A stretch of 64,000 nt of DNA from Bugula neritina (GCA_964035545.1 OZ037770.1:14560642-14624641), one strand, 5' to 3'; positions 29,527-63,644 are shown, counted from the first letter of the stretch. The notes: generated by a model from the letters alone, not told the origin. Made by a program: numbers and translations.

Positions 29527-32500
29527 ATGAAAGCCGTCAGGTTGAAACAAATAGCTTTTATTGCCACCTTAGGATTTACTGCCATCTGGTTTCGATTCCG
29601 TAAGTTTAACCTCATTTGATTTTAATTATCATAAGCCTCTACTTATATCTATCTTCTCTGCTGTTGCGTGACTAGTATACCAACAGTAACATGTATATGA
29701 GAACTACAAGTAAAAATATAATCATTTTCATAAATTGGGAATGAATGCTGACATGCTGGGTTGTGTTTCCCAATATTGAAACTTTCATTCATTTTCATTT
29801 CATTTTTTTATACAATTATAACTGTTTTAACTCTTCTTTACTGATGTTATCAAATGTTGAGGTGCAGAGCTGGCTAGTACTAGTACTAGTAGATTGATTT
29901 CAAGGCAAAGATATAGCCATACTGTGACTCATTGCGTCAGTCGTTGTGATAGTCATAACCGAATTACACGAATAGAATAAGATAAAAAAACACAACCTGG
30001 GCTTTGATGGCCTTTATTGATATTTTTACTTCTATAACCTCAATATAAATGACATGGTTTATATGCCTTGAAAAAGTTCCCAGCAATGCGTTCGACACAT
30101 CAATAAAAAGTCATCGCATACAAAGTGATGATAACTTTTTGCTTCGAGCTATAACTAAATTAGGCTATAAGTGGGCAAATACATCTGCCTATCTAAGAAT
30201 TAATTAAGTTAACTAGTAGTTATAGTTGCACTAGTACTCCGGCAGTAAACTTCTTGTAGCTTACTGTGACATGAATTATATTTGAATCAAGTAACACAAC
30301 CACTATAAAGTAGGTACAGACCAATAAGCAGAGATATTAGCTTAATTTGAACATTTTTTTTAGAAATTGCACGGCATACCCCAAAGTTTTGTATAAACAA
30401 TCGAAGAGCTTGACAGTATAAGTAGAAAACTTGTGTTCTTGTAAGTGTGTCAGAGGTTAAATAGACTTGCCCTACGTATAGACTTGAGAAATGAGCATCT
30501 GTATCACATACAGATTTTCTGTTGACTATTAGTCATAAACGTTTCCTTTCTGTTATGATGTTGATATAGTCCTATATATTATAGCCTAAACGCAACATTC
30601 GATTTCATATAGCCCCAGTTTCACTGTTCGTCCCTAAGTCAACTTCAGTTAGAAGTGGAAATTGAAACTACCCAGTTTAGAATAATTACAACACTCCTTA
30701 GCCTTATGATATTTGAGTGGAACACGTAAGCTACTATACCAGCATATAACCACACTCTTTCCACGTGGCTGATAACATTGTTCATCAACTCAACTACTAT
30801 TTTTAGATGTTTTTTTAGAAGTCTTAAGTTGCTTTGAGTTTTTAAACTTGAGAAATCTTGGTATGGCAGTACAGTCAGTCTAGGTCATAGCACTACTAGT
30901 ACTGTAGAGAGTCTCTCTACTAATAGTACTGTAGAGAGTTTCCCTACTAATAGTACTGTAGAGAGTCTCTCTACTAATAGTACTGTAGAGAGTCTCTCTA
31001 CTAATAGTACTGTAGAGAGTTTCCCTGCTAATAGTACTGTGGAGAGTTTCCCTACTAATAGTACAGAGAGTTTCCCTGTGTTGTGGTGGTTACACTTTTC
31101 CAGCTTAGGAAATTCAAATTACTTTATTGAGAATTCCAACTGGTTTAAAATATAATACTTACCCCATTTGAGCACAATCCACTGCACCAACACCTGCCCT
31201 TCCATAGTGCGTATAGTAGTGAACTATAACAAGACTATGACAGACTTACAAGGATTACCTACCAGATTAGTGTTAATCACTAAGCAATGTGCTGTGTCAT
31301 GACATTCCCTCAGCTGGTTTATTTATGTCCCCCTCGTGTAAACTAGCTGGGTCAAGGTGGGCATGCACCAGCACTTATAGTGCCAGCAGTTGGTACCAGC
31401 AGCTGGCTGAAGGGTGACACGACATTTCACAAATGTCAATTCAAAAACAAGTTTAAGTTGAAATAATTACTACTTATTTACTTTTATACTTGTATTATTG
31501 CGTGATGTTATTATGTACATTTTATGTTATTTAATTTTATTAACTGTATTTCATTTTCTTCTTACTTTTCAGTTTTAACTAATGAAATACGGTTAATAAA
31601 ATTAAATAACATAAAATGTACATAATAACATCACGCAATAATACAAGTATAAAAGTAAAAGTAAATAAGTAGTAATTATTTCAACTTGAAATTGACAAGA
31701 TTTAAAGCTTTCAGCAACAAATATAAACCCCGTATAAGTTAGGCTATTACGGAAGTAGTGTTAGCTACCAAACAGTCCTAATCTGCAATTGCCCACGTTT
31801 ATATTAACTTATTCTCGACCCGGTCGAGCTCACACCCGGCTGGGCCGTATCCTTTGTGAAATGTCATCTTTAGAAATGTCTTTTTTCTAAAAGTCAATTT
31901 ATTAATTGTCAATTTAGGAATTGTCAATTTGGGAATTGTCTTTTTCGAAATAGGTGATTTTGAATTGTCATTTGTGAAATGTCGCGGATTCGGCTGAAGT
32001 GCTTATAGGTGTAATGCTAAGTGATTGCTGGCAGGTACAAGTCAAACAATTTCCTGTTTATGTTTTATAAAGGAAGCCACTACTTGGAAAGTTGTTGGAT
32101 TTATGTTACATTTTGTAGACCGATACTACTGGTGTCATCACTCCCTCACAGTATACTTTTAAGATGGCAGCATTTATAATAAGCAGTTGGGAATTCAAAC
32201 ACTGCAGTAACTAATTACCAATTCTTATTACCATTGCCATAATTTTAGTTTTTCATTACTGCAGTAACAGATGCTTAATTTACTTGCCATGCCTCATTTT
32301 ACCCAACTCTTAAGAGTGGAATGAAATTTCAGGAAGTGCAAAAGGTGTTTAGTCAACTGTGGAATATTAAATAGTCAACTGGTATGTGTAAAAAAAGACC
32401 TAGCACAGTGTATATACCAACTAATTTATTATTCACAGAATTGACATATGATCTGTCACATTCATCTATTCACTTGCGGGTTTTATGAAGGTCTCTTACT

Positions 32501-35500
32501 TGTGGTATATCTGTGGGTTTACCTATGCATCTTCACTTATAAAATGTAGATCGCAACTTTAAGATGATGGTATCTGTTCATCTATTTCAGTAAAAAGAAG
32601 TATTTTATGTTACTAAAAGCTCATAGGAAAATCCAGTGACAATTGTTTAAGTTCCACTCGACTGATACAAAACTGTTAACGCAATCATAATTTCAGATAC
32701 ACTCTTGTTGTAGCTTGAATATTTTCTATTATGTAATTCTCGGTTAAAAGCACTCTACTTTTTTCACGGTTGACCTTTGGTTGACATTTAAGCGGAAATT
32801 CTGTTTCCAGAATAGCAAATGGGCAGCGTCATGCTTGTGACTTTTTGTTCATGAAATTTTGCTTATCTCTGAACAAGTTTGGTTACAGCGGTCTAAGAGT
32901 ATTTTGACTGCTTGACTAAGATCTATTTGACTAAGATATGTTGTTATCATTGGGTGGTTTTAATTCTTGTAGTCAATGAAGTGCTGCATAGTATTGACAG
33001 ATATTCTAGTGGTGCTGTCAAATTATCTAGATTCTAGTTTAACCACCATAAATGTCTCTACTGACTATGCAGCATTGGTAACAACTCTTGCCGACCTCTA
33101 CACTTTACCCCTGCTGCCATTCATATTGTAGCTCTGCTATCTAGTAATTAGTAACGTGTTTGTTCAAAGAGGCCTCAACGAATATCCCTACACAGTCGGA
33201 GTTGCTTACTCTTTGTGTAGTGAACTGTTGATAGATTCAAATCTACTGTGTAATCCACAATACTTCACCTAGGAACCTATTCTCATAGCCTCAGAGTAGA
33301 TATTGCTCTGCATTTGAGATTTGAAAGGGTTATTTTCCATCATTTATCTGCAGCGTTGACCTAAATTTTGAATTCTCTCTCCATGTTGATATCAAAAGAT
33401 AACCAAACATGCTAACTATCTGCAGCTACTATATGCTTAGTGAAGGTTTTTGTAGAATATCTGATTGATGAGCTCTTGGTGATTGATTTGCTGCGACTTC
33501 CGGTTGCCATGGTTACACCCATGCTCACTTCCACAAAATACTATAAGATATTTAGTCGAACCATCAGTACTACAGAGTCTAGTTGCTAATGTTACAATAC
33601 AGAGATCAGCCTTGGGTAGTTTCCACTAGCACTATAAACTCTAGCCTGTAAGACTGCAATTTGTAACCTAAGCTTAATTAACCATAAAAAATCTATTAAT
33701 TGAGGAAATATTATGAAGAGTTGTCCAACTTTTCGTGTTCTCTACTGAATATAATTTACTCAACTTGTTCTGCCATGCCTGGAGCTGCAACTTACAAATT
33801 TGACTGCTACTAATACTACTACTACTACTACTACTACTAATACTACTACTACTACTACTACTACTACTACTACTACCGCTACTACTATACTACCGCTACT
33901 ACTACTAATGCTACTACTACTACTACTACTACTACTACTACTACTACTGCTACTACTAATACTACTAATACTAATACTACTACTACTACTGCTACTACTA
34001 CTACACTACTACTACTAATACTATTACTACTACTACTACTACTGCTACTATTACTACTGCTACTACTACTACTACACTACTACTACTAATACTACTACTA
34101 CTACTACTACTACTACTACTACTACTACTACTACTACTACTACTACTACTACTACTACTACTACTACTACTACTACTACTAGTACTACTACTAATACTAC
34201 TAGTACTACTACTAATACTAATAGTACTACTGCTGCTGCTGCTACTACTACTACTACTGCTGCCATTCCTCCACTGCGTTTCCACCATAATGCTAATGAA
34301 TTTTTTATTCGCCTAATGGAAATAGTTACATCAATAAAACCGCAACCATAAGTCCGTACAAACCACAAAACACGATTAATTAATTCGGAATAATGTGGCA
34401 TTCATGGAAACACAGTGTTTGTACAGCTAATGTTTGAAGGTCAAAGGTTAATTGCACATCACTGGATCAATTAGGCTACACTAATTACTGAATACTGGTA
34501 CTAAGATTCCAGGGCCAACCTCAGCCCGCGCAGGCCATTGAGCATTTCACAGTAATTTCCTGTCACAATACCTGTGCATTTTGGACCATGAACTTAGGTG
34601 ATATAGATAATCGGTTTGGCTAGTGATAGGTTTATTTTTTCTACTGAGTCTATTTAACAACACTTCGACCTTTTAACAGAAGCAGGCGCCAGCTGTAACA
34701 CAATCTTTGATTTACAGGCCACAGTCTAGCATTAACAATTGAATGAAAAAATATGCTGCTTAGTTTATGATATACAGTAAAATAATTGTTCGTAAATTTA
34801 TTTACAGGTTTTATTTACATGAACTGTACCAGTTTGCAGTGTTAATAAGCTTTAATGAGCCTTCAAATGCTTCATGCTTATTGGCTGTCCCAAAGTCAAC
34901 GTTAACTGCTGCCTGAACACCTCAAAAGCTCCTTGTGCTGCCTGAAGCACTGCAAGAGCAATAATGGATCAAATTATTACTTGTTACTGTAATTATAGTA
35001 TCCTCTTCCACAAAATATACCATTTTCCAATATGTCTAATTAGATAAATTGCATCCATGCAATTTGAAATGCGGGGTCACATGGGAAAGCGCTTTAGGCC
35101 ATTCCTAAACTTTTTTAGACTGACTATAATCGAAACTCTACTGCACTAGTATGATAAAAACCTTTACTAGCTGTCACAATCTCATTGGTCAAAGCCATGA
35201 CAGCTGTGGCTAAACATGTGATCGTAACTCCCTTATGTAATATCCTGACAGGGAAAGCAAGACATGCTACTCCCAAGGGGAGACATAACAGAACATGTAA
35301 ATAGTAAGAATAACAGGGTTGGGGTAATTGTAATTGGTTGTCATTAATTACATATGTTCAAGTAATTGAATGTAATTTGTAATTGATGTATAAAATGTAA
35401 TTTTAACTAATTATATAGCTAATGTAACTGATTTTTACAATTGCCTTATAATTACAGAACAGTTACTTAAAATCTTTAACTCCTATAAATTCATACTTTT

Positions 35501-63400: not shown

Positions 63401-63644
63401 TGGTAGTTTATTTTTGGTTCTTATTAAATTAAATACAACTCTATATTAATTACAAACAATTTTGAAGTATCATTCTTTCCTTAGTATAATAATATATTTT
63501 AGATTGTGCAAAATCAAAACTATACTCAAAAGAAGAAACTGGTATTCATTCAAAAAGAAAGCGGAATGAACATGTCGGACTTCTTTTTATATTCTTCGAG
63601 GAATTTAATAGACAAGCCAGTGATTGCTCTCAATGGGGACATAA
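60466..63644 (+). CDS. Putative GT-A-fold glycosyltransferase, paralogue 4, 3'-partial (continues past window end)
   Basis: Exons 60466-60532 (MKWRNRLFYLVFLTITVLWFYQ), 61321-61554 (stem), 61746-61814 (FYLLVMLSVSN), 62443-62588 (RDQEYMSVLNHNL..VQEVHLFY), 63503-63644 (MSDFFLYSSRNL..VIALNGDI). The last two exons have the same 146/142-nt sizes and phases as in the other paralogues. Confidence 0.8.
60648..61070 (+). repeat. 27-30-bp minisatellite (GAGTACTATAACTATAACTGCTAATAAT) in intron 1 of paralogue 4
   Basis: Direct reading. Confidence 0.9.
62610..62945 (+). repeat. 21-bp minisatellite (AGCGAGTTTGTATTACAACAT) just after a paralogue 4 donor
   Basis: Direct reading. Confidence 0.9.

Follow-up and report, generated by a model that had tools for sequence, protein, structure and literature searches.

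A gene array of putative GT-A glycosyltransferases in the bryozoan Bugula neritina, with relatives in giant viruses and phages

Few Golgi proteins are better known than the type II GT-A enzymes, and GT-A-like families that lack annotation are not uncommon. The present study concerns a window of 64,000 nucleotides of DNA from Bugula neritina (GCA_964035545.1 OZ037770.1:14560642-14624641), in which a tandem array of paralogous genes (29527-63644) encodes proteins with features of such enzymes. Interest in B. neritina comes from its role in fouling, from the settlement of its larvae and from the symbiont that produces bryostatins. We interpret the array as part of an expanded family of secretory-pathway, metal-dependent GT-A glycosyltransferases unnamed in the databases queried, and assign to this reading, which is based on sequence and predicted structure, a probability of about two in three. 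It would not represent a new principle; if the proposed activity is correct, however, the genes would found a new GT-A glycosyltransferase family with an unusual N-x-D metal site.

Among the described systems, human GalNAc-T2 (family GT27) resembles the proteins of the array in its type II anchor-stem-GT-A layout, the anchor being a predicted one here, and its D-x-H, WGGEN and C-terminal His would be mirrored by N-x-D, (W)G-x-E-N and H-x-H, with a similar spacing of ~26 residues from E-N to the His. Retaining GalNAc-transferases have an Asn in the WGGEN motif. The differences from GT27 are nevertheless considerable: identity is ~10%, the ricin-type lectin domain is missing and the GT-A domain is ~100 residues smaller, the W and the G of the motif are not conserved, and the invariant SHD and NPC have no testable GT27 counterpart. 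A second system is EXTL2 (GT64), which is the best match of the bryozoan model in an exhaustive structural comparison (VIA), with the whole domain covered; moreover, the GT47+GT64 layout of the exostosins is echoed by a cluster of bacterial GT47-containing proteins in the ESM Atlas. Here, however, identity is 8-9%, the DDD of EXTL2 is replaced by N-G-D, and with a viral model of the family EXTL2 falls to Z 9.7, under many GT2-type enzymes. It is these GT2-type enzymes and CHPF that VIA ranks highest for the viral member (CHPF 12.6, K4CP 11.8, WrtF 11.7, HAS 11.7 and SpsA 11.4). They share with it the order of the core strands and, after strand 4, the place of the putative metal-binding loop, but they are mostly inverting and have as base the Asp of xED, where the family has Asn.

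True sequence relatives are found among hypothetical proteins of giant viruses and phages and a few cellular proteins described below. The viral proteins are 25-36% identical over ~200 residues and have NxDI, L(T/S)R, S-x-D, (E/D)-N, NP and HxH in common with the bryozoan ones; they differ in being shorter (213-290 residues) and in having no N-terminal anchor, stem or introns. They are either unannotated or labelled 'glycosyltransferase' by a pipeline, and a literature search found no experiments on them and nothing on the family as a whole, returning only the two genome papers.

Array, predicted fold and proposed active site

Four paralogues were located in the window by six-frame motif scans, inspection of stop-to-stop stretches and tblastn with stored orthologues:

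29527-40612, + strand: copy A, complete
44501-50509, + strand: copy B, complete
58734-53625, - strand: copy C, complete
60466 to the window end, + strand: copy D, the window stopping after exon 4

All the motifs quoted for these genes in an earlier note on this DNA were recovered, namely R-D-x-EY..NL..V..(V/L)HLF, DFFxY and VIA(I/M/L)NGDI in copies A, B, C and D, and GFD, SLTR, SHDTHVF, WGAEN and NPC..H-x-HCS in copies A, B and C. The short cytosolic tail and single hydrophobic anchor attributed to exon 1 are likewise predicted, since in each of the four copies this exon (67-76 nucleotides, phase 1) codes for some basic residues and, after them, 16-20 hydrophobic ones. Exon 2 encodes a variable, S/T-rich stem, which in copy C may reach ~200 residues and contains 30-nucleotide tandem repeats; the stem had been called S/T/P-rich, but it is not notably rich in P.

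The family has no name in Pfam, NCBIfam or the PDB sequences, where no match was obtained for the exons, the full-length orthologues, a 20-member alignment or the viral members, in line with the earlier inability to assign the proteins to a named CAZy family. With Pfam, nothing was found at E up to 10 for the full-length orthologues, for the viral members, or exon by exon, the exons being too short to inform; the PDB sequences (phmmer, hmmsearch) gave only chance matches, such as CBL at E 0.35, and so did NCBIfam. In particular, no significant match to the GT27/Pfam Glycos_transf_2 profile was observed in exons, orthologues or viral members, and none to GT64/Pfam PF09258 (Glyco_transf_64) or to Pfam NTP_transferase. 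A language-model search placed Glyco_transf_64 among the nearest named clusters with a score of 0.90, no more than a lead.

A read-through stretch of copy A matched two B. neritina proteins: P0001 (EB796_006937, 337 residues), which is the orthologue of copy B with exons ~89-98% identical, and P0002, which models copy C in part. The AlphaFold2 model of P0001, built on a 20-sequence alignment, has a mean predicted local distance difference test score (pLDDT) of 79 and a predicted template modelling score (pTM) of 0.75. Its parts are a helix at 2-24, then a disordered segment at 25-51 (pLDDT <50) and, at 58-270, an alpha/beta domain; taken together with exon 1 of copies A-D, the model reproduces the basic tail, putative anchor, disordered stem and domain of the Golgi type II layout. 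When the domain of P0001 was submitted to VIA, the following matches were obtained:

EXTL2 (1on8_A): Z 11.1, 216 of 265 residues aligned, root mean square deviation 4.5
PmHS2 GlcNAc-T domain: Z 10.6
CHPF: Z 10.6
K4CP: Z 10.2
EXT1-EXT2: Z 10.1
mannosylglycerate synthase (MGS): Z 10.1
GalNAc-T2: Z 10.0, 213 residues aligned
SpsA: Z 9.9

The model of a 232-residue giant-virus member, also obtained with AlphaFold2, was cleaner (pLDDT 86, pTM 0.87). Its top 32 VIA rows (Z 9.8-12.6) are all GT-A-fold proteins, nearly all of them named glycosyltransferases, while nucleotidyltransferases peak at Z 9.7; the best 50 Foldseek rows are all glycosyltransferases, GalNAc-T2 being the first (E 4e-6, template modelling score (TM) 0.57-0.59). 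Considering that the two models match EXTL2, CHPF, K4CP, SpsA, the GalNAc-Ts, HAS and MGS with Z 10-12.6 over 180-216 residues, the predicted GT-A fold, already proposed from the motifs, can be regarded as settled at the level of the models.

The invariant residues, in P0001 numbering and across bryozoan, eukaryotic and giant-virus members, are E89, Y147, N161, D163, I164, L187, R189, Y210, H214, D215, E244, N261-P-C263, H270 and H272. In the P0001 model, N161-G-D163 directly follows the hydrophobic strand 156-159 (VIAI), G212-S-H-D215 stands just before strand 216-220, E244-N245, whose N245 is near-invariant, heads the helix 243-254, and H270 and H272, which no cellular, giant-virus or phage member lacks, are found on the last core strand (268-270), 26-28 residues past E244. 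The sequence of NxD, G-S-H-D, E-N and HxH is thus the GT-A order of DxD, G-loop, xED and C-terminal His. On the models, NGD would therefore correspond to the DxD, E-N to an xED of the WGGEN type, and HxH to the C-terminal His. Order and spacing of the elements agree with the GT-A site proposed earlier for NGD, WGAEN and HxH; what does not hold family-wide is WGAEN as such, in which only E-N is conserved and W and G vary (YQAEN, NQAEN, WGTEQ).

According to this reading, each gene would encode a protein of ~300-340 residues that starts with a signal anchor, continues with a low-complexity stem of variable sequence and has one GT-A domain facing the lumen of the secretory pathway. A nucleotide sugar would be bound through the N-x-D loop after the fourth strand and a C-terminal His of the HxH, with a divalent metal needed, and the sugar would be passed to a glycan, protein or lipid acceptor, presumably in the Golgi. 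The xED at the N-terminus of the F-helix provides the catalytic base in inverting GT-A enzymes and is often replaced in retaining ones (PMC9364030). A retaining mechanism therefore appears somewhat more likely than an inverting one, since the family has an Asn in place of the catalytic-base Asp (x-E-N) and several of the nearest folds are retaining (GT27, GT64, GT45, GT78).

It should be noted that several points weigh against the glycosyltransferase reading. The canonical first Asp of the DxD is an Asn throughout the family, and in a phage member SHD and AEN are replaced by SQD and CDN, so that the proposed catalytic residues are not all universal. The motif equivalences are drawn from the order and spacing of secondary-structure elements and not from a three-dimensional superposition, and hhalign of the family profile against two single giant-virus GT2 proteins was not significant (probability <1%) and thus lends no support to the DxD equivalence. 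The full-length and fold analyses are those of P0001 (~94% identical to copy B), of P0025 and of relatives, the exons of the window having been searched singly. Rather than an anchor, the hydrophobic segment at the N-terminus could be a signal peptide that is cleaved off. Finally, the scores of the fold matches level off (Z 9-12, identity 5-14%) without any family standing out, and for the P0001 model some nucleotidyltransferases come nearly as high as the glycosyltransferases (FbiD, 7p97, Z 10.4; HddC, 9.7; IspD, 9.0).

The latter observation bears on a different chemistry carried by a GT-A-like superfold, such as that of a nucleotidyltransferase acting on sugar phosphates or other substrates, of a transferase for phospho-sugars or phospho-alcohols, or of an enzyme hydrolysing nucleotide sugars. 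RmlA and eIF2B indeed head the Foldseek list of the bryozoan model, and the missing first Asp of the DxD would fit such a chemistry. However, for the cleaner viral model most of the 32 best VIA rows and all of the 50 best Foldseek rows belong to glycosyltransferases, the G-x-G-(T/S)-R loop of sugar-phosphate nucleotidyltransferases is absent after the first strand of P0001 (58-63, FHILTM..), the F-helix headed by x-E-N and the C-terminal His are GT-A features, and a luminal, stem-anchored layout suits Golgi glycosyltransferases. We consider this alternative unlikely.

The unusual DxD could also be the mark of catalytically dead GT-A pseudoenzymes, acting as partners, chaperones or glycan-binding subunits. 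CHPF and inactive EXT-like subunits are thought to act as non-catalytic partners, and it is a CHPF domain that gives the best VIA match of the viral model; in addition, two of the copies found outside the window (E and F, see below) are altered at otherwise invariant positions. On the other hand, some twelve polar residues do not vary between giant viruses and animals, a pattern typical of an active site, and the compact proteins of viruses and phages are single-domain forms to which no obvious catalytic partner is fused. Loss of activity across the family appears quite improbable, and active GT-A glycosyltransferases remain the preferred interpretation of the array.

Relatives in animals, giant viruses and phages

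Cellular relatives comprise a further B. neritina paralogue, four proteins of Watersipora subatra and two protein groups on large eukaryotic contigs of the European Nucleotide Archive (ENA), at least two of the ENA-contig relatives being intronless single open reading frames (ORFs). In the ESM Atlas, unnamed clusters, mostly from Cnidaria and Mollusca, show the same features and fold (TM 0.65-0.68). The marine invertebrate range of the family covers Bryozoa and, according to the Atlas, Cnidaria and Mollusca.

Anchorless relatives of the lengths and identities given above are encoded on 11 giant-virus contigs, on one of which a major capsid gene of nucleocytoplasmic large DNA viruses adjoins the family member. 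In one giant-virus locus (1-10525 of IMGVR_UViG_3300032311_000453), the family member lies in the middle of a cluster of glycan-synthesis genes, which encode four GT2 proteins, one GT25 protein, a UDP-GlcNAc 2-epimerase, an FkbM methyltransferase, an RmlD-like reductase and a Polysacc_synt_2 dehydratase. An ORF of 222 residues without Pfam match adjoins the family member of this cluster.

The family is also carried by two tailed phages, Synechococcus phage S-SKS1 and an uncultured phage of 735 kb. The S-SKS1 member (SWZG_00036, L026 7001-7711), annotated as 'hypothetical protein', has NADI, LSR, SQD, CDN, NPG and HFH; its start overlaps by 4 nucleotides the end of a nucleotide-sugar epimerase gene, to which it is translationally coupled, and genes for a phosphoheptose isomerase and a transaldolase are found nearby. 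The contexts in the giant virus and in S-SKS1 both point to glycan synthesis.

The earlier note had pointed to a resemblance of the motif order to hypothetical proteins of bacteria and large DNA viruses. The viral part of this comparison was correct, while relatives in cellular bacteria could not be confirmed: no relative turned up when 185,579 bacterial and archaeal genomes were scanned with sequence patterns, a negative of little weight since these patterns derived from animal sequences. A metagenome scan with an animal-only alignment gave only 2 contigs. In the bacterial GT47-containing cluster of the ESM Atlas mentioned above, one domain resembles the viral member (TM 0.79), which is a structural lead only.

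In a maximum-likelihood tree, a branch with 100/100 support separates viral from cellular sequences, the bryozoan sequences are grouped at 97/98, and at least one pair of paralogues predates the split between Bugula and Watersipora. The tree is unrooted, and the direction of transfer can therefore not be inferred from it. The existence of viral relatives on 11 contigs, and of intronless genes among the cellular ones, might suggest that the array is a recent insertion of giant-virus DNA, i.e. an endogenous viral element. Such an origin is very improbable, and it was rejected on account of the six spliceosomal introns of each copy, whose positions and phases are shared, of the orthologues present in a second B. 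neritina assembly and in Watersipora, and of the tree. In addition, the base composition of the array is like that of its flanks (the window is AT-rich, with ~32% G+C throughout), and the genes are transcribed and spliced.

In its broadest form, the view taken here holds that an undescribed glycosyltransferase family, with an N-x-D/S-H-D/E-N/H-x-H site and probably retaining, occurs in tailed phages, giant viruses and, patchily, in marine invertebrates, and that in bryozoans it has given rise to a gene-converting tandem array making lineage-specific glycans; for this wider claim we would call the odds about even. The patchy range, from phages and giant viruses to a few marine invertebrate phyla with a nine-copy bryozoan expansion, makes the family a useful subject for studying how glycan-building enzymes pass between viruses and hosts. 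The family may also reveal bryozoan-specific glycans, and, if the activity is correct, its compact viral members (~230 residues) would be good targets for structure determination.

Gene structure, transcription and possible sequence exchange

Each gene has seven coding exons, and the positions and phases of the six introns are common to the copies. All the exon borders that could be placed are GT-AG, the sole exception being one GC-AG in copy B. The exons are as follows:

29527-29599, + strand: copy A exon 1; start codon, basic tail, hydrophobic anchor MKAVRLKQIAFIATLGFTAIWFRF, phase-1 GT donor
36721-36918, + strand: copy A exon 2; stem rich in S/T, with FNNQFHVLVMLSVFNG (the domain's first strand) at its end; best-candidate acceptor
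37874-38019, + strand: copy A exon 3; RDKEY..NLENKLVKEVHLFY
38421-38562, + strand: copy A exon 4; DFFLY..VIAINGDI (NxD)
38879-39019, + strand: copy A exon 5; GFD..SLTR
39296-39397, + strand: copy A exon 6; SHDTHVF..WGAEN
40347-40612, + strand: copy A exon 7; NPC..HHNHCS through stop codon
44501-44576, + strand: copy B exon 1; MARKLKACLVSITLVLLTVYWLSGN, signal anchor; RNA contig depth in 2 of 4 runs
45382-45510, + strand: copy B exon 2; stem, GC-AG donor; outside RNA contig coverage
47112-47257, + strand: copy B exon 3; joint 47257>49143 in 4 of 4 runs
49143-49284, + strand: copy B exon 4 (NxD); joint 49284>49541 in 2 runs
49541-49681, + strand: copy B exon 5 (GFD..SLTR); joint 49681>49798 in 3 runs
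49798-49899, + strand: copy B exon 6 (SHD..WGAEN); joint 49899>50232 in 4 of 4 runs
50232-50509, + strand: copy B exon 7; NPC..HxHCS, C-terminal hydrophobic tail, stop codon
58662-58734, - strand: copy C exon 1; MSVAIPKMLVFITGVGIILIWFYFG, signal anchor
56909-57541, - strand: copy C exon 2; long S/T/N/Q-rich stem, 30-nucleotide repeats; candidate acceptors 57541, 57349 and others
56464-56609, - strand: copy C exon 3
55735-55876, - strand: copy C exon 4; VIAMNGDI
54875-55015, - strand: copy C exon 5; GFD..SLTR
54268-54369, - strand: copy C exon 6; SHD..WGAEN; DNA 92-94% identical to exon 6 of A and B
53625-53845, - strand: copy C exon 7; NPC..YHKHCS, stop codon
60466-60532, + strand: copy D exon 1, candidate; MKWRNRLFYLVFLTITVLWFYQ, phase-1 GT donor
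61746-61814, + strand: copy D exon 2, candidate; ..KFYLLVMLSVSNG; acceptor 61746 or 61713
62443-62588, + strand: copy D exon 3
63503-63644, + strand: copy D exon 4; VIALNGDI

The first exon of copy A would be joined to the other A exons, 7 kb downstream, as their shared phase and orientation suggest. The donor of copy B exon 2 (45511-45512) is GC (GCAAGT), and the published B. neritina model is the sole source for this border.

Copies A-C are complete in the window, as stated earlier, but copy D is not a fragment, its exons 5-7 being located just beyond the window (L020 247-357, 1625-1726 and 2104-2319). The chromosome-level assembly of B. neritina amounts to 216.00 Mb (PMC11480708). An exon-by-exon profile search of the assembly (216,009,554 bases) found at least nine family members: copies A-D, copies E and F, which follow directly downstream on the same chromosome, a further copy ~140 kb upstream and a pair on another chromosome. 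Seven of the nine copies are therefore on the chromosome of the array, and at least six are adjacent in it. The local expansion described in the earlier note is real and larger than stated there; the term 'glycosylation system', in contrast, was an overstatement, as what is present is one expanded enzyme family and not a multi-part system. Beyond the window, copy E carries NPA instead of the NPC of all other members (L021 4716-4934), and copy F has WGADN and SHDSH (L022 6351-6464); E and F may be relaxed or neofunctionalized paralogues.

As regards transcription, contigs from four public runs (four studies, same organism label) were mapped to 44520-50519. These runs consist of assembled contigs, and hence give no expression levels; their RNA nature was guessed, and they were taken as RNA because of the exon-only coverage and the spliced joints. 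Exons 3-7 of copy B were covered, whereas the intron bins flanking exons 4 to 7 were nearly empty; exon 1 was covered in two runs only and exon 2 in none. The four joints listed above are all GT..AG and coincide exactly with the predicted borders. Spliced transcripts, whose absence would have refuted the proposal of the earlier note, are thus present for exons 3-7 of copy B. Certain contigs run from exon 6 into exon 7 of a different paralogue, which suggests that more than one copy of the array is expressed.

The comparison of the copies suggests exchange of sequence within the array. Exon 6 (39296-39397, 49798-49899 and 54268-54369) is 92-96% identical in DNA among A, B and C, whereas the remaining exons of A or B are 57-69% identical to those of C, and identity drops again in the introns flanking exon 6. 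The exon 6 peptide is near-identical also in D (L020 1625-1726) and E (L021 4359-4469), but not in F or in the dispersed copies. This looks like gene conversion limited to an exon inside the array. Copies A (37874-40612) and B (47112-50509) form a mosaic as well, with 96-97% DNA identity in exons 3, 4 and 6, 89% in exon 5 and 74% in exon 7, a pattern suggestive of a recent duplication or conversion covering only part of the gene.

With regard to the C-terminus, copy B (50440-50509) and P0001 end in a hydrophobic helix (..GFFAFFYSFLSRWT), and several eukaryotic relatives (P0024, P0031-P0033) end in a clear second transmembrane segment. Some members of the family may thus be anchored at both ends.

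Intronic repeats

Intron 3 of copy B contains a repeat (48120-48919) with very high summed depth in all four runs and many internal joints. Its loose ends look tRNA-like (…GGTTCAAACCC…), but no tRNA was called in it by ARAGORN; it is probably an abundant element resembling a short interspersed nuclear element.

In intron 1 of copy C (57569-58422), an 11-bp unit, TACTGTAGTAG, is present in about 77-78 copies with 97% identity. The long ORFs over 56808-58484 were discarded as artefacts of this repeat, which yields three overlapping spurious ORFs of 320-558 residues (YYYSTTTVLLQ...). Similarly, intron 1 of copy A (33803-34258) holds an (ACT)n microsatellite of ~153 copies, giving rise to poly-T, poly-L, poly-S and poly-V pseudo-ORFs on both strands.

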